From the NCBI RefSeq assembly GCF_000143415.4, contig NW_003314261.1:6050822-6114821 (forward strand): DNA of 64,000 bases, in the 5' to 3' direction. The notes under the pieces are model-generated. The model ran no database searches. It worked only from the letters and a program-made list of their open reading frames with translations, and had not been told where the DNA came from. This document shows positions 2,796 to 61,590 of the stretch, piece after piece. Within the stretch, counting starts at the first letter, position 1. Each line of letters starts with the position of its first letter. Both the position numbers and the translations under genes were made by a program. The DNA is from Selaginella moellendorffii. Its lineage: Eukaryota > Plantae > Lycopodiophyta.

Positions 2796-5372
2796 TTTAT
2801 TTTTGGCTTCTTTATTGTTTTGTTTGTTCTTCAACATTTTTTAAACATTTAGTCAAGAGTTCTTATCTTTTTCATGCAGATACATATATCATGCCACAAC
2901 ATAAGAAGCATGCCAATCAACCTTAATAAACTGTTCTCTAGAAAAATGATTACATTGTTGTGCTAGATTCCCTAGAGAGATTTCACAAGTTCAAGGAGTT
3001 GTTTTGGAAGACGACCATGGTGGGAGTAGTGGTATCTATATCCAGGCAATGCTTAATCTTGATCCAAGTGTAGGCACCCAAGAGCCAAATGTTCATATTA
3101 ACATTGAAGATCCACTTGCTACTATTGGTTCTGGTGAGAGTGTGGAAATGAAGAACTTATTTGTAGCACAAAAGAGCTAGTGATGAGGTATCTAGTGCCA
3201 TAGGTAGTAGAGAGGATGAGGAAGCCGATCTTGATAGAGGAAATGGCAGACATGCTATAAGTGCCAAAGGTAGTAAAAATGACATATGCTAAAGGCTAAT
3301 ATAATCTTGAATGAGTGGATACATAAAACTTGTCCAAGCTTAAGAATGAACTATCAATAGGGTGTTAGGTAAAATGGCTTGGATCTGTAGATTCCACTTT
3401 GCTATCTTTGGGTGCACTCAGCCTATGACTTCAACATGGCTATTTATACCTTTTTCACAAGTTAGATTTAGACACACCACTAGATAATTTATTATGGTAC
3501 GATTTCTTGGAACCAATTGCATAGACATAGTTATTTGAGAGATCAAGAAGACTTGGGATCAAATATAACAAAGGAAATCCAAGGAGTTCAATACTTTGAT
3601 GGCATGCCACAAGAAAACACAAGCCTTTGTAGGCTGGATGTTTTGCATTATGGATGGAAACCACTAGTGGCTAGTGTTTTAGAGATGTATCCAAGAAAAG
3701 TTTCAAGACAACAATAAACAACACATTTGTGTTCTAATGACATTGTAGAATCAAAGGATTGAAATCAAGCTATGAGGCTCAATTTAGCATGTTACAAAAT
3801 TAATATGTAAGAATTCCTTACTAGTTGCTTTTGATCTCACTAACTATATTATAGGCTTAACTAGTTTGCATTTTTAGCACATACCCTAGTCTATGATATC
3901 AAGCATCTTCTATATGTTGGCATCCTCTCTCTTGAGGAAATCTAGATGTGAGCTCCTCAACACTTGACATTGTAATAATGATAAAAGGCTTGAGAACAAG
4001 CTTGAGAATGTGATGAAGGAGAAGTTTTATATCACATAGAGTATTGCAACTGTTCAGGAGTTACTTTGAGCACAGGATACATAATTCTTTACCAATGTAT
4101 ACACTTTCCAAATACATCCAAGCTTCCCTTCAAGAGATTGGGGATGAATGACTTTCTAATGGCAATTTAAGCATCAAGAACTAACAAAGTTAACTATTTT
4201 TCTCACACCATATGATGTATATATATATTGTAAGGTTTTAACTTTTTAATTTAATCATGGCTCCTTTATAAGTATTTGAATAGTTGCTTAGGTGCTTTGG
4301 TGTACATAACAAGTGTTTTTCTCAAGCTCTTAACTGGTAAGAAGAAGCTTGGGATATATAAGCTAAAGTTCCATTGTCCCATTGTATAAGAGTGAGAGTT
4401 TTGTCTATGGTACTTGGAGTTGTGGGGGCAAATGTCATTGTTACCTTTTGGGCTCGATCTCTACCTCAAGTATCATCTAGGTTTGATGAGTAAAACTTTC
4501 TAACACTAATTATTTTTATTATCACCTATTGTGAATTGTCCTAAGAACACCTTGAAATGCACTCTCCTTCTCCAATGCAAAAAACGCACAGCCAATCTCT
4601 TTAATTGCTAATATTATTAAACCAAAACCCTCTATAACATCAAGCACATTCCCTTAGGACAAAACAATTGTAGGAGGATTTGCATGGCCTTTAGTAAATA
4701 GTGTTGATAGCTAAGGACTTTGGGCGAATGTCCTTATTGATGATATTTGGGATGATGTCTGTTAAGCTATTATATCCTGGCAATGCTAAATTTGCACACT
4801 TATCAACTCATGTACTGCTATGATGGCAAGAGTAGTGGCAAAGAACATAGTAGTTCCATACTAAAACCTACAATGAAAACAAAGAAGTAATTAATTTAAA
4901 ATATGAGAAATAAAGAAAAGCAATCCTTTTGGATTTAGCCACTAGCACCTTTTATTTCGACTAGGATGTTTGAGAGTAGGCAACCTAATACAACCTCAAC
5001 CAATCTAGAATCATCATTCTCCATAAGAAAACCTCCCTAGAATAAAGAATGGGGAAGAATGACCAGCATGATGCCCTTGTATTGTAATATTTTGGATGCC
5101 ACATCCATTTTTTAAGAAATATAGTTCAATTGAAGGAAGTTTTAGGTGTGAGACACAAATCCTTGAGCCCCAAAGTGGAGCCGAAAGAGTGCCACATGGT
5201 AGTGGCTAAAGCAAAAGCCAAACAAGTATAACACGTTTGGATTAAAAACTCTGACTTGAAAAGTCAAGAGCAGGAATAGAACTCCTAATGGAGTGCTCAA
5301 GGAACGAACACGAGGCAAGAGTCTCTAGAAAAGGGACATTAGAGGACCAATACGTGACACATGGAGGAGTCT

Positions 5373-5818: not shown

Positions 5819-5953
5819 AATACTAATACAGGCTATTGGGGAAAGCCCAAAGCAATTGTCCTTCGGGGGGGGGAGGACGGGGGTTGCAGGGGGTTCCAAA
5901 AGTATAGTAAGGAGAGTGTTGGGGTTGGACTCTAGTGGAACCAGTTTGGCTAG

Positions 5954-6925
5954 NNNNNNNNNNNNNNNNNNNNNNNNNNNNNNNNNNNNNNNNNNNNNNN
6001 NNNNNNNNNNNNNNNNNNNNNNNNNNNNNNNNNNNNNNNNNNNNNNNNNNNNNNNNNNNNNNNNNNNNNNNNNNNNNNNNNNNNNNNNNNNNNNNNNNNN
6101 NNNNNNNNNNNNNNNNNNNNNNNNNNNNNNNNNNNNNNNNNNNNNNNNNNNNNNNNNNNNNNNNNNNNNNNNNNNNNNNNNNNNNNNNNNNNNNNNNNNN
6201 NNNNNNNNNNNNNNNNNNNNNNNNNNNNNNNNNNNNNNNNNNNNNNNNNNNNNNNNNNNNNNNNNNNNNNNNNNNNNNNNNNNNNNNNNNNNNNNNNNNN
6301 NNNNNNNNNNNNNNNNNNNNNNNNNNNNNNNNNNNNNNNNNNNNNNNNNNNNNNNNNNNNNNNNNNNNNNNNNNNNNNNNNNNNNNNNNNNNNNNNNNNN
6401 NNNNNNNNNNNNNNNNNNNNNNNNNNNNNNNNNNNNNNNNNNNNNNNNNNNNNNNNNNNNNNNNNNNNNNNNNNNNNNNNNNNNNNNNNNNNNNNNNNNN
6501 NNNNNNNNNNNNNNNNNNNNNNNNNNNNNNNNNNNNNNNNNNNNNNNNNNNNNNNNNNNNNNNNNNNNNNNNNNNNNNNNNNNNNNNNNNNNNNNNNNNN
6601 NNNNNNNNNNNNNNNNNNNNNNNNNNNNNNNNNNNNNNNNNNNNNNNNNNNNNNNNNNNNNNNNNNNNNNNNNNNNNNNNNNNNNNNNNNNNNNNNNNNN
6701 NNNNNNNNNNNNNNNNNNNNNNNNNNNNNNNNNNNNNNNNNNNNNNNNNNNNNNNNNNNNNNNNNNNNNNNNNNNNNNNNNNNNNNNNNNNNNNNNNNNN
6801 NNNNNNNNNNNNNNNNNNNNNNNNNNNNNNNNNNNNNNNNNNNNNNNNNNNNNNNNNNNNNNNNNNNNNNNNNNNNNNNNNNNNNNNNNNNNNNNNNNNN
6901 NNNNNNNNNNNNNNNNNNNNNNNNN
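5954..6925. other. Assembly gap (N run)
   Basis: Ns. Confidence 1.
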
Positions 6926-9900
6926 ATGAGCCATTTCTAGCTCCCCTGAGAGATCAAATGGTAGATGCTCCCAATCCAAATGTGAGTAACACTACCTACT
7001 TGGATACCTAGTGTGGCTTATTAAAACCTCACTCTAGCCACCTGACTAGGGCACCCAAAGGCAGATGGTGGGAAGAGTACCCATAAGGCTCGCTTAGGGC
7101 TACAATATTTTGAAATGTTGTCCCAAAGTCCCAGACTAAGGAAATGAGGAGGAATAGTCCTTTTGTGTGGGGACCAAGGACCAAGGATACGGTCATGTGG
7201 CAAGGAAGTCCCAAAGGCCAGTGGGGCATAATGGTCGGGCCTGTGAACCTCGACCCAGTGGCAATATTGATGAACATGGCTGTGGATGAAAAGGGACTTG
7301 GTGGGGACCGAAAAAGGGATATTAGAGAAGGTTATTCCCCATGTTTACGAGCATCCTGAGGATGCTAAGGAGTGGATTTAGGATGATCATTCATGGACGG
7401 ATGGCCTAATTTTTGACAAAAGTGAATGGGTATAGCTTTAGTGTAATAGGCTGATTTATCAATGGGACCTTTGGGTATCAGTCATGGGATCAAACATGTG
7501 GAACATTTGGATCAAGTGCAATGGTTGAGTGGCATAGATGCCATTCTTGGGGCTAGTAAGTTCCTTTCGGAATAGAACTTATAGAGGTTATAAGTGAGAC
7601 TTCTCTAAGTGGTTGGAAGTGTGGTTAAGTGACTAAAGTAGAATGGAAAATTTAGTCGCTTACATTATGATGGAGTGTGTTGTAGAGGTGGCAACTTGTC
7701 GAGTAAATTTAAGAATATAAAGTCAACGTTAAAGGTAATGGTGAAGAACCTAATTCCTAACTTGCATCCATCTATAGAATATAAAAGACTTCTAACTTAC
7801 ATCATTGCAAAGCTAAAAGTAATCCAATAACTATTTCTACATTGCCAATACTTGAGGGGATCAATCACATAGTAGCAAGGAGAGGACTTCCAGGCAGCAA
7901 CAACATCACCATTACTAGAGATTGCACATTCCTCCTCAATTCACCACACTATGGGATCCAAGACAATACATCTCTAGAGGCTTTTTATATCTTTGGGAAA
8001 CTGTAGGCACTATACAAATGGAGATCAAGGGTGGTGTACCTCCACTAATCTCACAATCGACACAAGTTCTTCACATTGCAATCACATGGGAGAGATGAGG
8101 TTGGGGATCATGGATAAGGCGCAAAGTTCACCACCATTATGGATAGGGAGCATGTGTTTATGGGGTGAGTGGCACGAATCTAGGTTGCACAGAACCAAAC
8201 TCTAGTTCCTTGGTCTGATTTGCATAGAACCAAACTCTAGTTCCAGGGATCCCCCCTTCATCACCACCCCCCCCCCCATATGCTCTTTTCCGGTTTAGAG
8301 CATGTCGAAATTGGACCTCTATGGTTTTTAAGAGGATAAATATGAAAAACCCCATTAGACATTGCCAACACTTTTTGTTGGCAAAAAAAACTAAAAAATA
8401 TTTGATAATGCATGTTTTTTTTTCATATCTATTTATGTGAAGCTGACAAAGATAGCTCTTGGAGTTCATCCTTTATAACAATGGGGAGGGATGGAAAGAA
8501 TGCATTTATATATTAGTGTATAGAGTGTTGGTTGGTTTCTCCAACTTCTACATTTGAATTACAATATTATAATTACAATTTATTTCTCTTCGGTCTACTT
8601 AATAGGACCTTTGTAGCACATATGGTTTTTACCTTTTATCTTATGGTGATTTATCATAGGATAACCACAAAGCGGAACCTAAACCACTATGTGCCATATA
8701 TCATATGCCACATGCCATGTGTTGAAGGATAATGGAGCAAAACCCAAATTTCAAGGCCTTGGGCCACTGAATGAAGGTATGAAGCCAAACTCCCAAGCTT
8801 GTAGCCAGGGAGTGAAAGAACTAGAGCATGGAGCAACTCTTAAGCATTTAGCCCAAAGAGTGAAGGGACATGAGTATGAAGTGACGTAAGAATAATTCTA
8901 AAGCATTCAGTATGCCAATGCTAGGATTAGCATGCAAACAAAGCCAAATAGAGCCTAGTGCTATTTCAACATATTGGTGGCCTAACGCAAGGATATGGGT
9001 ATTCCACCAGTTAACATGGTATGAAACCTAGGATTAGACTTAAGCCGAATGCAAAACAAAAATAGGCACACAAGCATGAGTTAGACTATGCCTCAGATTG
9101 GTCAGCTATATCTAACCTACCCACTATCCCTATTATATATTTGGAACCCCCCACATATTGTATTCAAGACAATCTTTACATTCCTCCACATTAGAAAATT
9201 TAAACACTTTCCATAAATAATAATTGGGTCCGAATAGGACTAACATAAAGGGTATGATAGCAAAAGTGTTTGGTAGACATAATAAGTTATCATCTAGCAA
9301 ATATTGAAGGACCAATCTCAACATCTCAAAGGTTTTTACCAAGCTAGTGTAGGACAAAGCAAAAGAGAACTAACAAGTCAGGCCAAGTATGCTTGGCTAA
9401 ATAGACACTTAGGAATTCCTTCTTTATGTTCGTTTGGCCAAATACAGATGCTAAGTCAAGTTTATTAACACTTGAACAAAAGGGACTGATAAAGAGTCTA
9501 ACAATACCAACCTCCTGTCGTTGTGGCAGTAAGGAAAAAATATTTGAAAGGATTAGCTGACAAGTAACTTTTAATACTTATAATCACATTTGCGACAAAC
9601 TTATTCAATATGAATCTCCTCTTTGTCTTGAGGCATCTGTCCAGAAGTGCCTTTACAATAAAGTAAAAACATGTGTGTATATTAAGTGGATTGATGATAT
9701 GGGCTATAACTTGCCATGCTATGTAGAAGCAATTGCACTCATATACAACAAGAGCCTATAGTGATAGAGTATTATATTATAAGAACTTTGTAAGCAATTA
9801 AAGAAAACGGCTTGAGAAATAATCCATAAGGTAACTCATATACAAAGGGAAAAAGCTTATAAACAAGAGTGCAATCAGTTAAAGGTTTTGGGATAGTTAA

Positions 9901-12853
9901 GGTTAAATGTCCATAGGTTTGAATATTATTAAGCTAGGAAGTCTAAATTCAAGAGCTTACAAACTCCTCCTTTAGATGTGGATTATGAGGAAGATTAAAT
10001 TTAGTTCTTTTTTCCTACTCAATTTTTATAGTGAATTTCTTCTTTAACTTATGATATTTAGTTTCTTATTGGATTTATATTATTTAATTTCTTCTTGGAT
10101 TGAAGATAAGTCTTAAATTTTGAATGGAATTGTTGGTTTATCCCAAACCAATCATTTGAACATCAAATTTTGTATTTGGTGAACTATAGTGACATCTATT
10201 AACTTGAGCTCAGCTTGTGAGCTAAGCTCAAAAACTACCCAGCCCCTCCAACAAACAACCATTGAAAGATCACCTACCCTTTGATGCAGCTTGAACCCAT
10301 GGCATACAAGTTCAAAAAGAATGGCTAGATCTTGAATATAAATAATGGATGATGAAAATTGAGATGATAGAAAGAAATGGAAAATGGAAAGAGATATAAG
10401 AATGAAGTATAAAGTTTTAAAACATGCTGAAAAAACTAATAAGGGGAAAACTGTAGGGTTAAATCAAAATTTAGAACCAAGAAAATGAAGAACAAAAGAG
10501 ATAAAAAAGTTAAAGAAAATAAGTAAGCTAAGGAAGAGAGTCTTAAACCTAGATCCCAGCCTCAGAATATGTATAATGGTAAATACTTTTATATCCCAAA
10601 ATCAACTCAAAGTTCAAGTGGAAGAGAAGAGAAACAGAGAGAATCTGTTGCTTGAGAATGTGAGTGGATGAATGGATGGTGGGAGAAAAACTATTATTTG
10701 GTCAATTGCTAGAACCTTTGAGGAGTCTCTAGAGATAACCAACTACATATCTCGTATTGATGATAGAATTGGTCTAGCAACTCAAGTTTTGGTCATAACA
10801 CTCACTTCAGAGGTGGTACAAAACTAAAACCAAAGACTAAAATCTATGCTAACGCCATCACAAGTTATAGAACAGCCAAGAGCTGATACCCCCTCTACCA
10901 CAAAAATGTGCCTCTAAGTAGTATGTAGAGCATATTGTCAACATATGTCCAGCCTACACTTCACTTGGTGAGTCTATGTATATTCCTGGATATATTCAGA
11001 GATTATTCCATATGTTTAGAGCAGATTAATTATTGAAATACACATTTTCCAATGTGTTTCTGATGGAATCTTGAATGTGCAACAAGGTTGCAAAATCCCT
11101 TACAATTGATCCAACCATGGTAGAATATCTCACTTTCATGTGAGGCATTATATGGAGTATAGTACAAATCAAAAGATCCATGGTAATTTCAAGTTAAGTA
11201 TTTCCTCTTTAGCCTTTGATCTTGTATTTTTTAGATCTTTTTTTTTTTAATTCCAACAATTATTAGATCAGGCTTTTTGGTTGCATGAATCCTAGATTTA
11301 ATTAATTCTAGAACTTTTGACTATCTTTTACTTGTTTTTATGTGAGAGATGCAATTTAATCTTTTCTTATAATCCAGTTAAGAGTTGAGGCAAAGAAGTA
11401 TAATGACTATTGACAACCTCTTATTTGCTTTAGATTTACCATTAGTTTTCCCCGAAATGATCATCTTTAACATATCAATGCCACCCTAACGTGCCATCAT
11501 TTTTTACTCTGAGACCATTTTTCCACTCCAATCATCTTTCACAAAAAAATTCCATCTTCATGTATCCCATCCCATTCCCCTCTTACCACATTTATGTTTA
11601 CCACCTTTTTCAATAATCCTTTTTCTAAGAACTCTTCAAATCACAATACTAGAAAATCCATTTTTTAAGGTTTTAGGTCTTAGTTGAAGCTAAGTATCAT
11701 GGCAAATTACAATATCATCAACAATCTAACTGGACAAGGTTTTTGGAATAATTCTCTATGTTGACTCAATTTTTCAAAACTTAGTGAAGGTCAACCAATC
11801 AGAAGTTACAATTGAAAGTCTATAAATGTTTGATGTCAAGGAGTTCATGTTTACTAGGCAAAATGCATTTGGCTCTTTGGCATATGGTGAGGTGGAAAAG
11901 TCTTTCTTTCAGCCAACTTTAACTTTTAGAGGAGATGTATTCTCTTGTCTATTAACTTGTCATTTTCAGGAATCTTTTTCTTCTTTAGCATCAATAGCAA
12001 TATTTTTGCCAATGGTTTTAGTACCAAACGTTCATGGTGTCTTTTAGAAGACTCCTTTACACATTTTTCACCTACTAGCTAAGATATTAAATTGTAAGCA
12101 ACCAACTTGAAAAACAAAACTTAATTTCCTATTGGGGTTTAAATATAAAAGAAAAAGACATATGAATAAAAATGCATTCTTTTTCCAATTCATTAAGTGT
12201 ATTAAAATATTTGAGGTTAAGCATATCTAATCTTGGAATAGTATTGGCTACATGATTTTCTTGGGAAGTCTAAATTCAAAATTTTACATTTGGTTTTAAA
12301 GAAATCTCAAGTCTGATTATTATGACACTATAGTTGGGTTAAACATTTTTTCAATATTCAATTTACTCATTTAGATGGTTCTTTAAAGTTTTAGCTAAAA
12401 TTCATTATCATTTAGAAGTTATAGCTACAACTAAATTAGCCCAATTAGTTTAGTTGGCATCCAGGTCCTTTTTATAGAGCTCTTAGCAAATAATAGCTTT
12501 TTGTGTTGCTAATCTGCTGAATTTTATAATCTATCTACATTGCTTCATACACTACTTATCATCAACTTAAATGGTCTACAACAAGTATAAATTGGCTCAC
12601 TGTGAATTTTGTTGCATCCTAAACTTCAGAACACCACAGTCATGCCTCTTACTTCCAGATACAATACAAATGGGACTTTAATTTATATTTATACTATAGA
12701 TGGTACTAAGGACCAGAGTGAATGAGGTGAATCCCATGCTTCTTACAACAAACCTATATATCTCAAACTGCCCGGTTGGGTAAATTGTATATGCTAAACT
12801 GTTGATTTATTTTAGATTGGATTTAGATTTTTATATTACAAACAACCACATTA

Positions 12854-48514: not shown

Positions 48515-50487
48515 ATGGGCTCCCTGGTAAGATTCTTTGCTCGTTTTCGTTGCCCCGGTGATAGCACCATTTTGTGTGAAGGGCGAGCATTGGCCGAATG
48601 CTGCGATACGCCGGGTCGATGCTTCGGCGATAAAGGAATACGCTCAGGCAAACAAGCATGGATTTCAGTTGGAGAAGAAGCCGATCAATCCAAGTCGGCA
48701 ATGCTTCGCAGGAAAAATCTATGGCTTGAGGCTCATAGTGGCGCTCCATGCCCCAGCAGGTGAGCTCAGTTTCCGTAGATGCTTTAGTGAGTTCCATGCC
48801 TCGCAGGTGATTTCTACAGCTTCATCGGATGCTTCAGCGAGTTCCACCATGTCTTCGTAGAGAAAGCTCTTCCGGCGCACCTCGGTATCAAAGATTACGC
48901 CCGGATTCTCGGCGAGGAGCTTGCGACGTTCGCTGAGACGTATCACAGTCTCCTGCCACCACCCCGCAAAATGGAATCCATGCATGATGCTCTTGAGGTT
49001 CTGGAGGAAATCCGGCAGGATGCACGCGATTGGGAGAACGACGTCGCCAAGCTCTATCCAGTTTTGGTTCTTCTCCCGGTGGACTTTTTGCCTGGGAACG
49101 ATGGCACGTTTGGCAACTGCAGCGGCCTCACTGACGACACCGAGGAGCCCGATGGTGTTCCCATGGACGAGCTGTGTGCGGAGCTGATTGATCCAACTAA
49201 ACTACCGATCTTCACTGTCACTTGGGACGTGAGCTCGCGCAGTGACAAGGAGAAGTTTATGAGGCTGTCCGAGTATGAGAAGAGAGGCCATCTTGTGCTC
49301 ACCGTGAGACCTCCAAGCTTCCATCTTCCAACCGCTTGTCCGAGGAGCCTTTCCACGTACCTCTACCTGTGCCTGGCAAAGAAGCCATTCCTTGTCGAGC
49401 ACTCCAATGCCGGTGAGCTTTCCTTTCTTTCTTTTGTATGGCAGATGCTCACGGTTTTTTTCAGACCTCAACTTACCTTTGGTGGACTGGAACCTCCACA
49501 CTGTGTTTGGCAGCGGCGTGGACGACTTTTTGCGATCTACGGTGATGTGCGACTTGGATGTTGGGCTCAATGAGGGTGAAGCTGCGAAGGTTGAGTCCTT
49601 GAGGCCGCTGTTTATGGATCTGGACGATGCTCTCGACTTGGAGTTGTGGACGAAACGTCAGTGCAGGAAGAAAAGTGGCTGGTTTTCTCTCGATGCAGCT
49701 GGAGGGGACATCGAGACTTCACACTTGCCGTGGCCGATCAACAAGCTGGTGGCATGGACAAGGAGAGCCAGAGCAATGACCAGGCTTGGCATCAACTGGA
49801 AGAACTCAGAAGCCAGACAAAAAGAGGTAACAGTGAGAGCTTTCGAGGCTTTTATTTCTTTCTTTATGGCTTAAGATTGATTTCATTTCAGATCTATGGT
49901 CGAGCGTTGCGCGCTTACAAGGATCTCTCCTCTGTAAAGCAACTGAACAAAGATTCAAAGTACTTGTGTGGCATGTAAGTTATAGTGTAGCCTTTCATGT
50001 TTTTCTGAAATCTTCTTTTGTTCTAGGCGGCCCACGAGCCTCGATGCAATGCTCCTCGCTCACATTCTATTTGTGAAGCGCATCTCTCTTGTAAGTACCA
50101 AAAGCATATGATTTTTCTCTATGATTCATGTTGTTGTGTCATTGCTCTTAGGAGAACTCCATTCTTCGAGCTGCGCTTGAGTTGGAGCATCCGGAGCTCA
50201 TCGAGTACTCAGACCTTGGAATTCTTCTTATCGCCTGGCAGTGTGTCTGTGGATTGGGGACGGGATCCGCCGAGGTGCAAGGCAAGCAGACCATGGATGA
50301 CGGGAAGCAGCTCAAGAAGCAAAAGGCTGGCGGTGGTGGCGACGCCAAGAGCCGTGAGCAGGACGGTAAGAACTTCCACGAGTTTGTGGACAAGCTCAAG
50401 AGCAATGTGTCGGACGAGGAGGTGAGGCCGATTCTTTTCGAGAACGCTCAGGAGATGGATGCTTCCAGTTCCGTTCATCAGCATTGA
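48515..50487 (+). CDS. Chimeric METAXIN-like protein (546 aa): unknown N-terminal region, metaxin GST-like core, PARP3 exon-1-derived tail; 7 exons
   Basis: Exons 48515-48526, 48582-48759, 48807-49412, 49465-49826, 49892-49974, 50027-50090 and 50152-50487 splice at GT-AG into one open frame. Metaxin-like motifs VRPPSFHLPTACPRSLSTYLYL, LDDALDLELW, LPWPINKL, RLGIN..NSEARQKEIYGRA, RPTSLDAMLLAHILF. Confidence 0.65.

Positions 50488-51940: not shown

Positions 51941-51984
<44 letters not shown>
51941..51984. repeat. (TA)n microsatellite
   Basis: Directly visible. Confidence 0.97.
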
Positions 51985-51985
<1 letters not shown>

Positions 51986-52353
51986 CCCTAACTAGGTAAT
52001 ATTAATTATAGTACTTTAGCATATAAATTGTTTATTTAAATTCAATCTATCCATTTTTGTATATGGGTTTAAACCTCAATTAATACTACTATAGAAAACC
52101 AGGATCAAATTGTCACCTTAAGTTCTCAACTAAACTTTTGAGAAAGTAAAACGTGTTAAGAACTGTAAAATCTGTTTTATTGGCTTCTGCAACACACTAC
52201 AAAATTATAACTTGTCATTCTATGACTAGTTGTTTTTTAAGGTCTTGAAGGCCATGATCTAATGCAATGGGATAAGGAATTGATATGTTGCACAATACAA
52301 AGAGCAAGGATGACTAAAGCAATGGGATGGAGCTATTTCCAAAGGCAGGAGGA

Positions 52354-52874: not shown

Positions 52875-55085
52875 GCTCACTAGCCCTAACCCTAAGTCAC
52901 AAATTTAGAACACGATCCATGTCCCATGGATGAGCAAGATCCTTGAAGAGGCCCAGTCTGTCCTTGTGGGCGCTGAAGATCACAACAATTGAGAACGGTA
53001 GAAAAACGGGAATGGCTGGCGCTGGAACGGCATCATAGTCGTGGGATTCAGCCATCGAAGAGAACGTGGCGTTTTCCTCCAGTAGTGCATGTCGAACTTT
53101 CTTTCTCGCCCCTGGTCCGTGTCATCTCTTGCCTGTAAATCTCCACCTCCCTCCTCGCATCCGCTGTTGTGCATCTGCAGCTTCTTGTAACCCAGGATCC
53201 ATGGCTGGGCAATGGAAGGAGCGATCCCAAGGCAAGTTCTTGCTAATTGTCGCAAGCGGAGAATGCAAACTTAAGGTCATTCTTCGATGCAAGGAAGACG
53301 GTTTCTGGCTTTGACAATCATGCTGGTATCAGCTTGTCTTATTAGTTTTCAACTATTTTCATTCTTTCAATATAGTTACCATGGATTGACGTCACTAGGC
53401 TAACGAGAGTTTTGCTGCTCTGCAGAGAACAAATCCTGTAATCGGCTCTATAGCCGATGCATAATACTCGAGGTGTGATAACCAACAGAGGTGTTTTGGC
53501 GACTGCTCACGTTCTGAACTTTGTTGCAGGTTATTGTCTTGTATTTGCGCTCGAAAAGAAAAGCTTTGGAGGACACTGAATCACGCCAGATGACGGTGAA
53601 ATAGACTACGTATTAAGCTCACTTAATCGAGCTCTTCTAGCAGATGAACGAGTCCTTGGATGGTATCCTCTTCCTCCTGGCTTTCATGCATGGTGTTAAG
53701 CGTTCTTTCTCTCGATCAAGTTAATACATTTGCAACGCAAGGCTGTGCTCTTAAGAGCAAACACTGCATAATACCTCGACAGTTGGCATTTTCCTGTAAT
53801 ACCTATAGCTTGTGTGACATGTTCAAGTCAGATGCCCTCAAAGAATGATGTGGGATGATAACGAAGACGATAGACTCGTGATCGAGCAGGACATCGCAAA
53901 GGTTCTTTTGCGAGCGGTGGGTGATGGGAGTCCTCTGAACTGCGTTCTCTAACTGCATGCCACTCACTCGCTCTCTCAGCTTTCTCACGCTTCGCTGCGA
54001 ATCATGATAAGTTTAATTCCACGGCGACTGCATTTTGAAGCCGCCTTCGAACCTTGCGGGCGGACTTCTCTTCCAGCAAGAGTCCTACAGGCAGCTGATT
54101 TGTCCGTCTCAATTGCTACTGGTAGTTCCGTCACTTAGCCTGAACCAGAAAGCTCAACAGGATCTGGCGGTGAGAAGCAAGATGGTAGGAACTCGTCCTC
54201 AGTGCTCCCTCGTCGGAGGCATTTTGACCCAGACTTGCAGTGAGCGGCTTAGCACTTTGAAGCTCAATCTGCACATTATAGACCCATCGCCTAAACAGAT
54301 ACTCAGCAGCATAAAACAAAATGCAGGCGGCGTTTCAAAACTTAGTTTCGTGAATGAGCTCAAGCACAGTTCTCCTTCTCCTCGTAATTCCAGACCCTGT
54401 TCACGACCCAGACGGACATATCGAGCTTAGACAGCCAGCAATTCTGGCCGAGTGTCGGGGGTACAGGTTTTCGGAGGTGGTAGCGCGAGAGACCAGCTCT
54501 CGATAATACTATGGTGAAGCGGATCGGCTTACTTGCTATCAGCGACGTAAATGGGGTCAAATGGGTGAAGGACAACTCCTCTCGTACAATGGTCTGATTG
54601 TCCATCCCAACCTAGCTTGGTTATCCAACACAATTAGCACGGCTAAAAGCGAAAACACGAAAAATGAATAGCCTACATAAATGCTGGCACTTTGAAATCC
54701 CGTCGGACTGCTTTCTTCTCGCGCGCTAATCTCAACGCAGCAGCGTCATCGTCTTCGTCCTGAGTTGGCTCAAGCAGTGCGGAGGAGGCATGTATTGCTG
54801 GGAAGTTTGGTTCGTAGGAGAGAGGATGGAAAATCCTGCCATGGAGTGGACCTTGGGAACTGTGAGAGTCAGGCCGCTGCTTGCTTCCCCCGGAATACGC
54901 GATGAAGGAGTCCAGATATACGAGTCCTTGGGTGTCGTCCAGGTTTTCGTGCACAGTATCACTCTCGAACTAGATCGTCAGGAGCTGCACAGGTTCAGCT
55001 GTTCAGTACAAGTAGTTTGTCATTGAGGATGTAGAGGCAAGAAAGCCAGAATTAACATCTGTTGTATTTCAACAAGCCTGTGTCT

Positions 55086-55868
55086 CTATTCTCGACGAGC
55101 CTGAACTGACCACTCGCGCACGAACACCAATTCTAGATCGACTTTCAGTCGCTCCTCGTTTCTCCGCTTATACTGGTGGGAGAAGTTAACCTTCATCAAT
55201 CGTCGCATAGCCTTGAGGAATCTTCTCTTCTTGGCGAGTACACTCTTGCTCGCATCAACCAGAAGCATCTCTCCACCACAAAATCTGTCTCTGCTGCAGG
55301 CCTCCGCAATGCCATCCAGTCCTAGATCGATGACCTCCTCCAATGTTGTACCTCTCTGCCCCTCCACCGGGTTCTCCAGAATCCTCCTGGCTGGTACACT
55401 CCCACTCCCTATAGCAAGGATGGGATTCTCACTGCTCAATTTGTAAACTTGAAATCCTGCGCCAAGATCACGCACCATGAAAAGCTCCGAGTCGTTGTAT
55501 ATGAAGAAAGATGCCAGGTATCCTGTGATGACGCTTTGGGCAACATCCGCTTGGCACTTCAAAAATTCTGCTGCTTCCTCCAGCCCAAATTCTTCTTCTT
55601 TTGCCTTGATCTTCAAAAGCTTCGCCATGATGTCGCGCTCCTTGACGTTCCCTGCCGCGCCCAGCATGAGCCTTGGATTTTCACAGATCTCCACTATCTT
55701 GAAACCCCGTGATTCTCTCCATACTTCCTCATCTTCACACTCTGTCGTCGTCAAGCTATCGAAAAACACGACAAACCCAGAAGGATCCTCGCACTTCATG
55801 GCAATGCCTATAGTCCCTCTCTCGATTGGCTTGCGACTACAAAAGGACCTTGCCAGCCCTGGCAGCAT
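55086..55868 (-). CDS. Highly divergent proteasome beta-subunit-like (Ntn-hydrolase/threonine protease) protein, intronless; 5' end abuts a gap
   Basis: G|TIGIA..GFVVFFDS..FKIVEI..LGAAG..AA.FL..AIGSGS..A..ILE..T.EE.I.L..I.EA..RDRFCGG follows the proteasome beta motif order. Confidence 0.65.
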   Translation of the reverse strand: MLPGLARSFCSRKPIERGTIGIAMKCEDPSGFVVFFDSLTTTECEDEEVWRESRGFKIVEICENPRLMLGAAGNVKERDIMAKLLKIKAKEEEFGLEEAAEFLKCQADVAQSVITGYLASFFIYNDSELFMVRDLGAGFQVYKLSSENPILAIGSGSVPARRILENPVEGQRGTTLEEVIDLGLDGIAEACSRDRFCGGEMLLVDASKSVLAKKRRFLKAMRRLMKVNFSHQYKRRNEERLKVDLELVFVREWSVQARRE

Positions 55869-55909
55869 CGTGGCGACAAGCTCCTTCGACTTGGGAGGTG
55901 CTGACCGCC

Positions 55910-56318
55910 NNNNNNNNNNNNNNNNNNNNNNNNNNNNNNNNNNNNNNNNNNNNNNNNNNNNNNNNNNNNNNNNNNNNNNNNNNNNNNNNNNNNNNNNNNN
56001 NNNNNNNNNNNNNNNNNNNNNNNNNNNNNNNNNNNNNNNNNNNNNNNNNNNNNNNNNNNNNNNNNNNNNNNNNNNNNNNNNNNNNNNNNNNNNNNNNNNN
56101 NNNNNNNNNNNNNNNNNNNNNNNNNNNNNNNNNNNNNNNNNNNNNNNNNNNNNNNNNNNNNNNNNNNNNNNNNNNNNNNNNNNNNNNNNNNNNNNNNNNN
56201 NNNNNNNNNNNNNNNNNNNNNNNNNNNNNNNNNNNNNNNNNNNNNNNNNNNNNNNNNNNNNNNNNNNNNNNNNNNNNNNNNNNNNNNNNNNNNNNNNNNN
56301 NNNNNNNNNNNNNNNNNN
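55910..56318. other. Assembly gap (N run)
   Basis: Ns. Confidence 1.
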
Positions 56319-56994
56319 CCGCGCACAGAGATTGCCGTGCCCATGCCGCTACCACGAGCTCACACAAGATCCTTCGCATCGTGCTAGCTCTCGGGGCAAG
56401 CATCTTTCTAGTAAATTAAGAACCCTAACCCTATTCATTTTGTATATGTTAAGCTCAAATTTTTGGGTTTTCCTGTCAGATTTTTCTATAGTTTTTTGGT
56501 TTGATTAAAAAAATTAGTGAATATATTTAAAATATGATTAAATATTCTAGGATATCTTACCATTTAATGGAAATCTTGTATTTATAATTTATAAACATAT
56601 ATAAACTTCACTTATTTATAACTTATTTATAACTTATAAATGTATAAATATATAATGTATATATATATTTATAACTTATAAACATATAAGTGTTTTTCTT
56701 AAACACTTTCTAGTGTATTCCTTTTTATTCTACCATGTAATGGTTGATATGCAATAAGATTAATCTTGTGTTTATAGATTATTAGCATGTTTATAATTAT
56801 AGACATTTATTTGATCAATTGGATTAATAAGTAATAATAACATTACTATTGAGCAAACCAAGCATTACTATAGAAAATTATTTAATATATTTAGGAAATA
56901 TTACTGTAGCACACCCATAATATAATTATTTTACATTAGTTTTAATAACTCATATAGATTAGCATGTGGTTATTAAATATTTTAAGAAAATTAT

Positions 56995-57609: not shown

Positions 57610-57952
<343 letters not shown>

Positions 57953-60059
57953 TTATATGCATGTATGTATAAGGTAATATGCTAATTATAGTACTATAAC
58001 ATATTGACTATTCATTTGGAATTGAATTTGGTCCATCTATTATTATATATAAACAGGGTCTAAACCTCCATTACTATACTTATTTCCATATCATAAACAC
58101 TCACATTAATGGAGATAATGGGTATTGTAATCTGTCCCTGGAGGGTAAAGTATTTTTGAAAGTGCTTTACTTCAGTATTTGGGATTGTATTTTTGTTTCT
58201 ATTCCTTTCTTTCTTTACTACATTTAGATTTATATTAGCTTTTTGCCAAATCTAAAATTCTAGCTATTATTGTGCTTAGATTTATTTTTCCTTCTGATCT
58301 TTATTACATTCTTTTTTTCCACTATGCCACGTCACACTTGAGGTTATTAATATTGCTTTGTTGAATTAAGCTTTTAGTGTTATAGGGTGTGATTATATTG
58401 GTGTGATACTTGTTCTTAGAATATTGTGATCTCTAGCTTTCATGAGATGTGATTACATAGCTTTTTCTATTCTTGGTGTTTTGTTATATGATATAGAATG
58501 TGATTATGATATCAATTAAAGAGATATAAATGATATAATTTGGTTATTGGAGAATGTTCAAAGATTGAATTTATATGATTGAATGGATTTTGGATTGTGA
58601 TAAGAAAATTTATTATTATGGAGATAACTTTGGAAAAAATTAAAGATTTTGCAAGGTAAGTATCAACCCTTTAATCTACCATCTAATCCTTTGCCTTTAC
58701 CTTTTACTCTTTCTTAACTTTTTTTTTATTTCTTAGCTTGAGCTATTTTCTTATATTCCTAGTGTTCTTTCCTCATCTATAGTGTTTTCTTCTCCACTTT
58801 TATGATTATCATTCTCAATCTAGTGTTGAGTTAAATGTTTTTTGTCTTCCTTATACTAATTTAAATGTTAAGCATATGCGTGTAGTTGAGAATCTTGATT
58901 TTGTTTTGTTAGTAAAGTCTTTGATCAGTTTTAGTGTTTTAAAGATTGAGTCACTTTGGCTAGAGTTTCGAGTTGAGTGCATATCCCCATTTGTGAGTCC
59001 CATTGAGAGCTTATACTTTATCATTTTTGCTGAAGAACTTATGTGTTCACTTGAGAGTGTGGATATTTTTATTGATTTTCTTATTTCAAATGTTGAATTG
59101 TGTGTTAATGTGAATCTTTTGATTATATTATGGTGACTAAAGCATTTTATGACAAGAAGTCTTTTATTTTCTAAATTTTAAACACAATAGTAGAATTGAT
59201 TGGTACCTGAGAGGAAAGTGTGAGCTTGCCATACCTTGCTCGGCAAATTGAAAATGTTGTGAGCAAATTTATAGTGATGTGGAACTTGATATAAAGGAAT
59301 TCCTTTATGCTTTTTTTGTTATGCCAAAACGTAATCTCATCTCCTAAACACACCTCATCACAGTGCTTGCCCAACACAGGCATTTAGATCAAGCAAGGCT
59401 TATCTTTAATTGAATCCTATAGTAGGATCTTTGCTCCTATTGGCTAGCATTTGCCAATAATATATAGTTTAGTGATATTTTTCAGCCGGAGCTAAGGCCA
59501 AGTATATATACAGGTAATTTTTAACTTTTATTACTAATGTTCTTCTTTTTATTTCCCCATTTTTGCATTAACAACTATTAAAAATTCTTCTTCATCCACT
59601 TTTCTTTCTTTTACTTCTTTAATTTTTTTCACTTTCTATTATTTACTTAAATGCTTGAAACTTTTTTTTCTTCGAAAGAGAGGATGGATGGGAGTCCAAT
59701 CCTAACGATGGAGTGAGGATGAACAAATACAATAATGAAGTGATGATAAATAATATAAATTGTGGAGTGAGAATGAATATAACTAAGTCCTAATAGAATA
59801 TACAACCTTATGTAGTAAACCTAAACAAATATGATAGTGGAGTGAAGTTCAATATAAATGGCAGAGTAAAGATTAATATAATAAATCCAACTAAAACTAA
59901 TGCTTTAAAACTTTTTTCTTTTTCAAGAAGAGGGGATAAAAAGGATATGAAAAATAAATAGAGTGAATTTAACCTCCCATGTATGGTGCTATAGGAAAAT
60001 GAGGGTTCTGAGTCTGGGTCTTGAATATTAACTGAAGGAAAGACCCAGAGTGCAGCACG

Positions 60060-61590
60060 TAAAATAGAGTTCTCCTGAGAGCATGAAACGCAATAGGAAT
60101 CATAGAGAAAAATCATATGCTTTTAGTACTTACAAGAGAAATGCACTTCACAAATAGAATGTGAGTGATGAGCATTGCATCAAGGCTTGTCAGCCACCTA
60201 GAAACCAAGGAAAGATCTTAGAAAAAGAATGAAAGCCTACATTGTAACTTATAGGATCCTTGTTCACTTGTATTACCAAGGAAATATCCTTGTAAGCACG
60301 CAATGCTCGACCATAGATCTGAAATGACACATGGTGATTTCAAAATTTCAATTATAAAGAACTCTTGTTACCTTTGTTTGTCTGGCTTGAGAGTTCCCCC
60401 AGTTGATACCACTCATTGTTTTGGCTTTCCTTGTCCATGCCACTAGCTTGTTGATCGGCCATGACAAGTGTGAAGTTTAGATTTCTCCTCCAACTACATC
60501 AGAAGAAAACCAAGAACTCTTTCTCTTGGATTGGCATTTGGTCCATAGCTCCAAGTCAAGAGCATCATCAAGATCCATGAACAGTGGCCTCAAGGACTGA
60601 AACTTAGCAGCCTCAGCCTCACTGAGCCCAACATCCAAGTCGCACATCACTGTTGATTGCAAAAACTTATCTACGTCATTGCCAAACGCAGTTAATAGGT
60701 TCCAGTCGATTATAGGGAAGTGGAGGTTGTCTAGAAAAAAACCATTAATGATAATCCTACAGAAAGAAAAGAAGGAAATACCAGCATTGGAGTGCTCGAC
60801 GATGAATGGCTTCTTGGCGAGGCATAGATATAGGTATGTGGAAAGGCACCTTGGACAAGAAGTTGGAAGATGGAAGCTTGGAGGTCTCACGATGAGCACA
60901 AGATGGCCTCTCTTCTCATACTCGGACAGCCTCACAAATTTCTCCTTGTCGCTGCGCAAGCTCACGTCCCAAGTGACAGTGAAGATTGGAAGTTTAGTTG
61001 GATCAATCAGCTCCGCACACAGCTCGTCCATGGGAACACCATCGGGCTCCTCGGTGTCGTCAATGATGCCACTGCAGTTGCCAAGCGTGCCATCGTTCCC
61101 AGGCAAAAAGTTCACCGGGAGAAGAACAAAAACTGGATAGAGCTTGGCGACGTCGCTCTCCCAATCGCGTGCATCCTGCCGGATTTCCTCCAGAACCTCG
61201 AGAGCATCATGCATGGATTCCATCTTGCGGGGTGGTGGCAGGAGACGGTGATACGTCTCAGCGAACGTCGCAAGCTCCTCACCGAGAATCCGGGCGTAAT
61301 CTTTGATACCGAGGTGCGCCGGAAGAGCTTTCTCCACGAAGACATGGTGGAACTCGCTGAAGCATCCGATGAAGCTGTAGAAATCACCTGCGAGGCATGG
61401 AACTCACTAAAGCATCTATGAAAACTGAGCTCACCTGCTGGGGCATGGACCGCCACTATGAGCCTCAAGCCATAGATTTTTCCTGCAAAGCATTGCCGGC
61501 TTGGATTGATCGGCTTCATGGACTGCTTCTCCAACTGAAATCCATGCTTGTTTGTTATTCCTCTAACCCATGAGCTCGCTAGGGTTTCCT
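60060..61590 (-). pseudogene. Inverted paralog of the METAXIN-like gene; 5' half near-identical, 3' half disrupted
   Basis: Matches about 48495-50175. In-frame stop at 60477, deletions at about 60240-60420 and near the 5' end. Confidence 0.8.

Follow-up and report, generated by a model that had tools for sequence, protein, structure and literature searches.

The stretch of DNA considered here (the window) is 64,000 nucleotides of the lycophyte Selaginella moellendorffii, from scaffold GL377565.1, and the element in question is a complete open reading frame (ORF) on the minus strand at 55086–55868, with 260 codons and a stop (55086–55088) when counted from the methionine proposed in an earlier, sequence-only reading; the true coding start probably lies further upstream, in an assembly gap. 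The part of the leader or propeptide that can be read in the window, residues 1–18 (55815–55868), is poorly conserved in the alignment with the paralogs and ends in the invariant Gly18, the equivalent of Gly-1. It is followed by a proteasome-type N-terminal nucleophile (Ntn) domain at residues 19–204 (55257–55814), delimited by Pfam, alignment and structure comparison, and by a C-terminal extension at residues 205–260 (55089–55256), placed by alignment and predicted to be helical in the structure model. Every motif listed in the sequence-only reading is present when checked by codon coordinates: Gly18 (55815–55817) and Thr19, the equivalent of Thr1 (55812–55814), in RG/TIGI; Asp37 (Asp17, 55758–55760) in FFDSL; Lys57 (Lys33, 55698–55700) in FKIVEI; Ser155-Gly156 (Ser129-Gly130, 55401–55406) in IGSGS; and, in SRDRFCGG, the Asp166-like Asp194 (55287–55289) and Cys197-Gly198-Gly199 at the Ser169-Gly170 position (55272–55280). 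The Gly47 region is represented in the alignment by Gly70 and Gly73, inside the domain. The last 56 residues hold 17 Lys and Arg vs 7 Asp and Glu, as expected of the basic extension that had been described, and they carry a motif specific to the family, N228-F-S-x-Q-Y-x-R-R236 (55161–55187), recognized by alignment. On balance, the data set out below tip slightly in favor of a functional single-exon gene for a very divergent Ntn member of the proteasome-beta/HslV superfamily, predicted to be an active, stand-alone threonine hydrolase.

Homology to the superfamily is established by Pfam PF00227 (Proteasome), which we take to be MEROPS family T1. The model is matched with 28.4 bits against a curated cut-off of 22.4 (E 1.5e-6), over residues 16–200 and model positions 2–183 of 189, and all five members of the family described below pass it independently; since, in addition, the key residues remain invariant at a paralog identity of 36–41%, the motif set and the fold signal are far beyond chance. 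Structure comparison returned the alpha-beta-beta-alpha sandwich of the proteasome type, and in a language-model search proteasome subunits made up 87 of the 100 nearest clusters. The candidate had been presented as a highly divergent proteasome-beta-like Ntn protein with a complete catalytic skeleton, a proposal that was to stand or fall with a match to the Ntn-hydrolase fold, and both the PF00227 match and the fold match bear it out.

The position of the protein within the superfamily is far less specific. The best solved relatives by sequence (phmmer against PDB) are archaeal beta subunits, at E 2e-3, with beta5 at E 0.6–1.4, and the Gly-Thr pair of the family is in register with archaeal beta in the profile alignment; the archaeal beta equivalog model NCBIfam TIGR03634 is matched with 22.6 bits, far below its cut-off of 224. 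Foldseek gives the best E-values and the best template-modelling (TM) scores by target to HslV/ClpQ (TM 0.64–0.66), and the HslV models (NCBIfam TIGR03692 and PRK05456) are matched weakly by two paralogs (E 2e-6 to 9e-6) and are not matched by the window protein. Across the family, four members match the archaeal beta model of NCBIfam and two match HslV, in each case with scores far under the cut-offs. With a profile built from the family, the scores are 22 bits for archaeal beta, 19.8 for archaeal alpha, 19.7 for human beta5 and 18.7 for HslV. Eukaryotic beta subunits, at 17–20 bits, fare no better than archaeal alpha or HslV, and these similar scores place the family about equally distant from every known proteasome branch. 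No plant beta subunit was returned at E<=0.001 in an exhaustive protein search, and orthology to any one of the seven plant beta subunits was not found. In structure-based comparisons the protein is 12–21% identical to any 20S subunit, in keeping with the earlier remark that only the motif skeleton of the conserved plant subunits is kept; it is not an orthologue of any of them.

The locus is transcribed without splicing. A contig of 1,177 nt (depth 23.5) from run X1 matches 54870–55893 as one uninterrupted, unspliced block with zero differences; it takes in the stop codon and the entire ORF as well as the 3' untranslated region (54870–55085, minus strand). The raw stranded RNA reads of three runs contain no joint anywhere in 54953–55909, and their depth falls to about zero at 54953–55039; the intronless structure that had been proposed for the ORF is thus supported by both the contig and the reads. 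In the three stranded runs, all first mates over the ORF map to the plus strand, as expected under the usual protocols for RNA transcribed from the minus strand, and the libraries are taken to be stranded because reads over the neighboring interval 53822–54169 have the opposite orientation. Run X1 is inferred to be RNA because it covers just two islands of a 2.6-kb stretch. At the synonymous allelic site 55458, three of six reads in X12 carry the other allele, which means that both haplotypes are transcribed.

The public JGI model of the locus, SELMODRAFT_403023, describes a different structure: residues 1–226 of the ORF, a splice at K226 (55191) and two further exons at about 54676–54964 and 54360–54605. 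This spliced structure was rejected, as it drops the NFSxQYxRR motif, has no read joints and draws its exon reads from elsewhere. No read joins the minus-strand stretch 54360–54964 to the ORF, and the supposed downstream exons do not belong to the gene. The reads over 54344–54952 reach a depth of up to 90, are 95–99% alike, fit mostly in part only and show fixed differences and replaced segments, while the apparent joints there have non-canonical ends and replaced letters; these mismatches and partial fits indicate that the reads come from a related, expressed gene elsewhere, of which the stretch in the window is a dead fragment. The interval 54344–54952 matches no Pfam family and occurs only once in the window, and the gene from which the reads derive lies outside the window. 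The unspliced ORF is therefore a better gene model than that of JGI, and the full gene is the ORF together with a probable upstream start. Beyond the fragment, plus-strand RNA covers 53822–54169 at a depth of 10–19, and its reads skip 96 nt, from 53937 to 54034, with ends that are not canonical; it represents either an unannotated transcript or further reads from a paralogous locus.

This probable start is masked by the assembly gap, an N run at 55910–56318 into which the frame stays open from the Met, as had been noticed from the sequence; in the gap-free allele of the other haplotype (locus L002) another 87 open codons precede the Met (L002 5977–6237), and the corresponding 5' part of the transcript, 55869–56318 on the minus strand, probably holds the real start codon. 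The X1 contig runs 153 nt past 55893 into the gap, to about 178 nt upstream of the Met, and this extension matches L002 and not the last 16 bases of the window before the gap (55894–55909), which differ by three indels from both the same-haplotype X1 contig and the other allele and are probably a gap-edge assembly error. In-frame ATG codons occur in L002 at 5977, 6001 and 6127; the last of these (MDSNV...) has a good context (GTCATGG) and lies 37 codons upstream of the Met, inside the stretch covered by the contig, and farther upstream a frameshifting indel separates the window from L002, so that this outer part is probably not coding. The precursor leader is thus probably about 55 residues long and not 18, with the real start upstream of the earlier Met, in line with the uncertainty that had been attached to the start. 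The leader MLPGLARSFCSR, which had been likened to a mitochondrial presequence, is probably not the N-terminus, and the acidic residues at the N-terminus of the leader of about 55 residues weaken that proposal, which is not supported. A telobox-like AACCCTAA(CCCT) motif at 56420–56440, just upstream of the open upstream frame of the gene, reads AGGGTTAGGGTT in the gene orientation, recurs in L002 at about 5946–5957 and may be a promoter element; a second such motif, at 51984–51992, adjoins a (TA)n run.

The two alleles differ at six positions in 783 nt, by four synonymous and two non-synonymous changes (A212T and R259Q) and no indels, giving an omega of 0.14 and a binomial P of 0.024 for at least four of six changes being synonymous under neutrality. 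The 3' flank of the same alleles, compared over 580 nt, shows 16 substitutions (Fisher P 0.0045) along with 27 gap columns, and the substitution density of the flank is 3.6 times that of the ORF. Between paralogs of the P0003 and P0004 types, synonymous divergence (dS) is about 1.0 and non-synonymous divergence (dN) 0.19, with an omega of 0.19; between the window copy and the paralogs, synonymous sites are saturated (proportion of synonymous differences, pS, above 0.75), so that dN/dS is not estimable and the split between them must be old. The alleles are under purifying selection, and selection of the same kind has acted over the long term. An unexpressed, neutrally evolving sequence, which the sequence-only reading had named as the outcome that would undo its proposal, is not what was found: the gene is transcribed and its alleles are indel-free and depart from neutrality.

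The family to which the protein belongs has so far been seen, by sequence comparison, only in S. moellendorffii. When 1.84 billion representative proteins were searched exhaustively with phmmer, five came back at E<=0.001, all from this species: the JGI model of the window locus (P0001, SELMODRAFT_403023), the model of the other haplotype (P0002, SELMODRAFT_422680), P0003 (LOC112344941, 41% identity), P0004 (LOC9635678, 40%) and P0005 (SELMODRAFT_404515, 41%). A search with P0004 scored on the domain alone, in which long fusion proteins were eligible, added only the further alleles P0009, P0010 and P0011 and returned no fusion of the domain to fumarase, TOM2A or a carrier, and a profile search of 5.8 billion proteins with the family alignment (covering proteins of 143–455 amino acids only) brought up no additional relative. 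Scans seeded with motifs, run on 185,579 prokaryotic species genomes (GTDB) and on JGI metagenomes, matched 167 and 600 stretches, respectively, none of which was confirmed, and a viral structure library gave only matches to phage HslV-like proteins, weaker than the cellular ones. The lineage-specific character that had been suggested for the protein is in agreement with the two protein searches. In all, the family consists of the other-haplotype allele, three to four paralogous loci at 36–41% identity and decayed copies; for the paralog loci, P0006, P0010 and P0011 were used in place of P0003, P0004 and P0009. Invariant in the family alignment, at this level of identity, are G18, T19, D37, K57, G70, G73, S155, G156, C197, G198 and G199, whereas the Asp166 position is Asp in the window copy and Asn in two paralogs. 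Where a paralog lacks the two-residue insertion in the hairpin, its Asp falls precisely at position 17 when numbering starts at the Thr. The C-terminal motif takes the form N-F/V-S-x-Q-Y-x-R/K-R across the family and is absent from the known families that were matched. In public databases the proteins are labelled hypothetical and carry a weak Proteasome domain match at most; none of the Selaginella gene identifiers is mentioned in any paper, and the family is undescribed in the literature.

The paralogs differ from the window copy, and from each other, in what precedes the domain. In the P0004-like copy of locus L004, the exon upstream ends in ...CAT G|gtgagc and the frame resumes at ...tgtgtag|GA ACT ATT GGG, so that a phase-1 intron (5116–5184) interrupts the codon of Gly-1; the RefSeq model of P0003 has the same break, with residues 1–17 at L004 11077–11127 and residues 17–253 at 11177–11887 (intron at about 11128–11176). 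In both types the Ntn domain therefore starts at an exon boundary. In locus L003 (SELMODRAFT_404515), the frame changes between 9005 and 9053, and a phase-1 interval of 56 nt with canonical GT..AG ends (8977–9032) would restore it; taken as a putative intron on the evidence of the DNA sequence only, this interval preserves the conserved ILRDPRPG that the JGI model loses through a donor 24 nt upstream. The regions upstream of the Gly-Thr pair are unrelated between paralogs: in P0004, 285 repeat-rich residues precede the domain, and the repeat-rich region recurs in P0006; in P0005 a PPR-like fragment is found there (Pfam PPR, 18.7 bits, under the cut-off). Decayed family copies and fragments lie beside the intact paralogs at L003 5726–5944, 7025–7387 and 11503–12129 and at L004 7962–8563, and L004 holds, in addition to fragments, a head-to-head pair. 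This mixture of intact and decaying copies indicates evolution by birth and death; the family evolves by duplication, by fusion to pieces of other genes and by decay, and the window copy is among its best preserved members.

The residues that a catalytically active beta-type subunit needs, G18, T19, D37 and K57, are invariant, and a mechanism may be proposed by analogy with the chemistry of 20S beta subunits. The precursor would cleave itself between Gly18 and Thr19; the freed Thr19 would then serve as the nucleophile, with Lys57 (Lys33) and Asp37 (Asp17) completing the triad; and maturation would yield an active threonine hydrolase that cuts peptide or other amide bonds. It would most likely work outside the 20S particle, on its own, as the low identity to every 20S subunit and the existence of several very different paralogs make incorporation unlikely. 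The conserved basic C-terminal helix with NFSxQYxRR could be an assembly or partner-binding element specific to the family. As judged from the alignment, three features chiefly set the family apart from 20S beta: Ser169 is replaced by Cys, Asp166 is replaced by Asn in two paralogs, and this helix is added.

Several observations weigh against a functional stand-alone hydrolase. The depth of reads over the ORF is low, 1–5, in the three stranded runs of 2026, and run X1 is labelled RNA by the guess of a tool only; the allelic test of selection rests on six substitutions; and no RefSeq protein model is apparent for the window locus, for which only JGI models were found. The Ser169 position is Cys in all members, which, with the Asn found at the Asp166 position in two paralogs, makes the surroundings of the active site unlike those of 20S beta. 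The structure model is of medium confidence, with a mean predicted local distance difference test (pLDDT) of 56.6 and values below 50 in the C-terminal third (a single-sequence AlphaFold2 model, at pLDDT 34, was unusable), and the homodimer prediction for residues 19–226, with a score of 0.01, gives no verdict and is evidence in neither direction. Within the family, the alleles of P0003 differ by two synonymous and seven non-synonymous changes (omega about 1), including the Tyr of the C-terminal motif, and the pseudogenes in L003 show a stop after FFDSLITK, a change of Thr1 to Met and a lone C-terminal NFSYQYGRR fragment.

Among the alternatives, a rather doubtful one is that the domain is a self-processing module and not a general protease, in which cleavage between Gly and Thr would chiefly free the domain from whatever lies upstream, or in which it acts as a ligase or transpeptidase of the connectase kind, spread by exon shuffling and free-standing in the window copy. 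The phase-1 intron exactly in the Gly-1 codon of the P0003- and P0004-type paralogs, by which the domain begins at an exon boundary, argues for such a module, as do the unrelated upstream parts, repeat-rich in P0004 and P0006, PPR-like in P0005 and a short leader in the window copy. Connectase provides a precedent of a proteasome homologue that is a monomeric, specific ligase; the archaeal enzyme reportedly demonstrates that members of the superfamily can take this form. The window copy, however, has no recognizable upstream partner, and the long-term conservation of Ser129-Gly130 and of the Gly47 region would equally fit an active site that goes on working after cleavage. A wider formulation, tentative and with the odds against it, is that of a self-cleaving, exon-shuffled eukaryotic branch, free-standing here and elsewhere placed behind unrelated proteins such as PPR fragments, in which autocleavage would free the partner and yield a new stand-alone threonine hydrolase or ligase of plants.

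It is improbable that the protein is an organellar, HslV- or Anbu-like stand-alone protease imported by means of an N-terminal presequence, the second possibility raised in the sequence-only reading. The leading position of HslV/ClpQ in the Foldseek comparison and the matches of two paralogs to NCBIfam HslV models at E 2e-6 are consistent with this, as is the composition of the leader readable in the window (4 Lys and Arg vs 1 Asp and Glu).

An origin of the family by horizontal transfer from a prokaryote, phage or giant virus, with later expansion, concerns ancestry only, is compatible with the functional readings and is likewise quite unlikely. Archaeal beta and HslV, and not plant subunits, provide the best-matching sequence models, and the profile scores are almost equal on alpha and beta, a behavior that has been read as a sign of deep branches (Fuchs et al. 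2021, PMC8665760). Weak best matches to archaeal models are nevertheless expected for any very divergent member, since archaeal sequences sit at the center of the superfamily (PMC8665760). No relative outside S. moellendorffii, and hence no donor for the foreign origin raised in the sequence-only reading, emerged among the 1.84 billion representatives, in the 5.8-billion profile search or in the GTDB and JGI motif scans, and the viral structure matches are weaker than the cellular ones; the paralogs, moreover, have spliceosomal introns, and the neighbors are ordinary plant genes. The retroposition that had been raised beside it found no positive evidence either: the window copy is intronless and the introns of the paralogs lie at different places, yet divergence is saturated, and neither a poly(A) trace nor a target duplication is visible at the locus.

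It is very unlikely that the locus, although transcribed, is a relic without function, an old duplicate on its way to becoming a pseudogene. The low expression in three runs, the decaying sister copies, the omega of about 1 between the P0003 alleles, the missing RefSeq model and the lack of known orthologues are what such a relic would show. The 260-codon frame, however, is intact in both haplotypes, with zero indels against 27 gap columns in the flank, an omega of 0.14 and a substitution density 3.6 times below that of the flank, and the catalytic residues are all kept despite saturated synonymous divergence from the paralogs. Least credible is the variant-subunit reading, in which this lineage would incorporate the protein into its 20S proteasome as an alternative beta subunit of its own: the beta-type catalytic residues, the Gly-ended propeptide and a C-terminal extension like that of some beta subunits agree with it, but every ring position of the eukaryotic 20S particle depends on specific neighbor contacts, and the protein shows only 12–21% identity to any 20S subunit and no preference among beta1–beta7, while its paralogs are very different and carry fused foreign N-terminal parts.

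The surroundings of the gene contain further features. A long (TA)n/(TG)n microsatellite at 57650–57970 forms a perfect hairpin-like inverted repeat and is the source of spurious ORFs there. An inverted repeat of 134 nt, 84% complementary, has its arms at 50000–50133 and 60091–60224, about 10 kb apart, with the gene in between; an ORF at 60480–61337 has a weak GST_N_4 match, and the inverted repeat fits an inverted duplication of metaxin-like genes.

Known proteasome homologues beyond the 20S subunits and organellar HslV are all from prokaryotes or phages, namely Anbu, BPH, connectase and 22 new proteasome-like families (Fuchs, Alva and Lupas 2021, PMC8665760), and no eukaryotic family of this kind appears in that survey (PMC8665760). 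A plant family that is expressed and constrained, has an intact threonine active site and has no place in the 20S particle would extend the catalogue of proteasome homologues to eukaryotes; if the exon-shuffled, self-cleaving module were real, it would be the first proteasome homologue outside 20S and HslV to be described from a eukaryotic nuclear genome. The family also offers a compact test case for the re-use of an Ntn protease domain, and it raises the questions of the proposed self-cleavage at what is an exon boundary in paralogs, of repeated gene fusion and of birth and death. At the level of annotation, the public gene model is corrected to the unspliced ORF plus a probable upstream start, the two downstream exons being a dead fragment of another gene.

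Relative to 20S beta subunits (archaeal PsmB; eukaryotic beta1, beta2 and beta5), the protein has Ile in place of Thr2 (GTIG) and Cys in place of Ser169, and in its family the Asp166 position is occupied by Asn in two paralogs; small insertions are present in the S1-S2 hairpin and ahead of Lys33, and a conserved basic C-terminal helix with NFSxQYxRR is added, in proteins found in one plant species only. The likeness to HslV (ClpQ) consists in the best Foldseek E-values and TM scores and in the proposed mode of action, since the protein would likewise act on its own outside the 20S particle; unlike HslV, which is a protein of about 175 amino acids with neither a propeptide nor a C-terminal extension, it has a leader of at least 18 residues and a C-terminal extension of 56.
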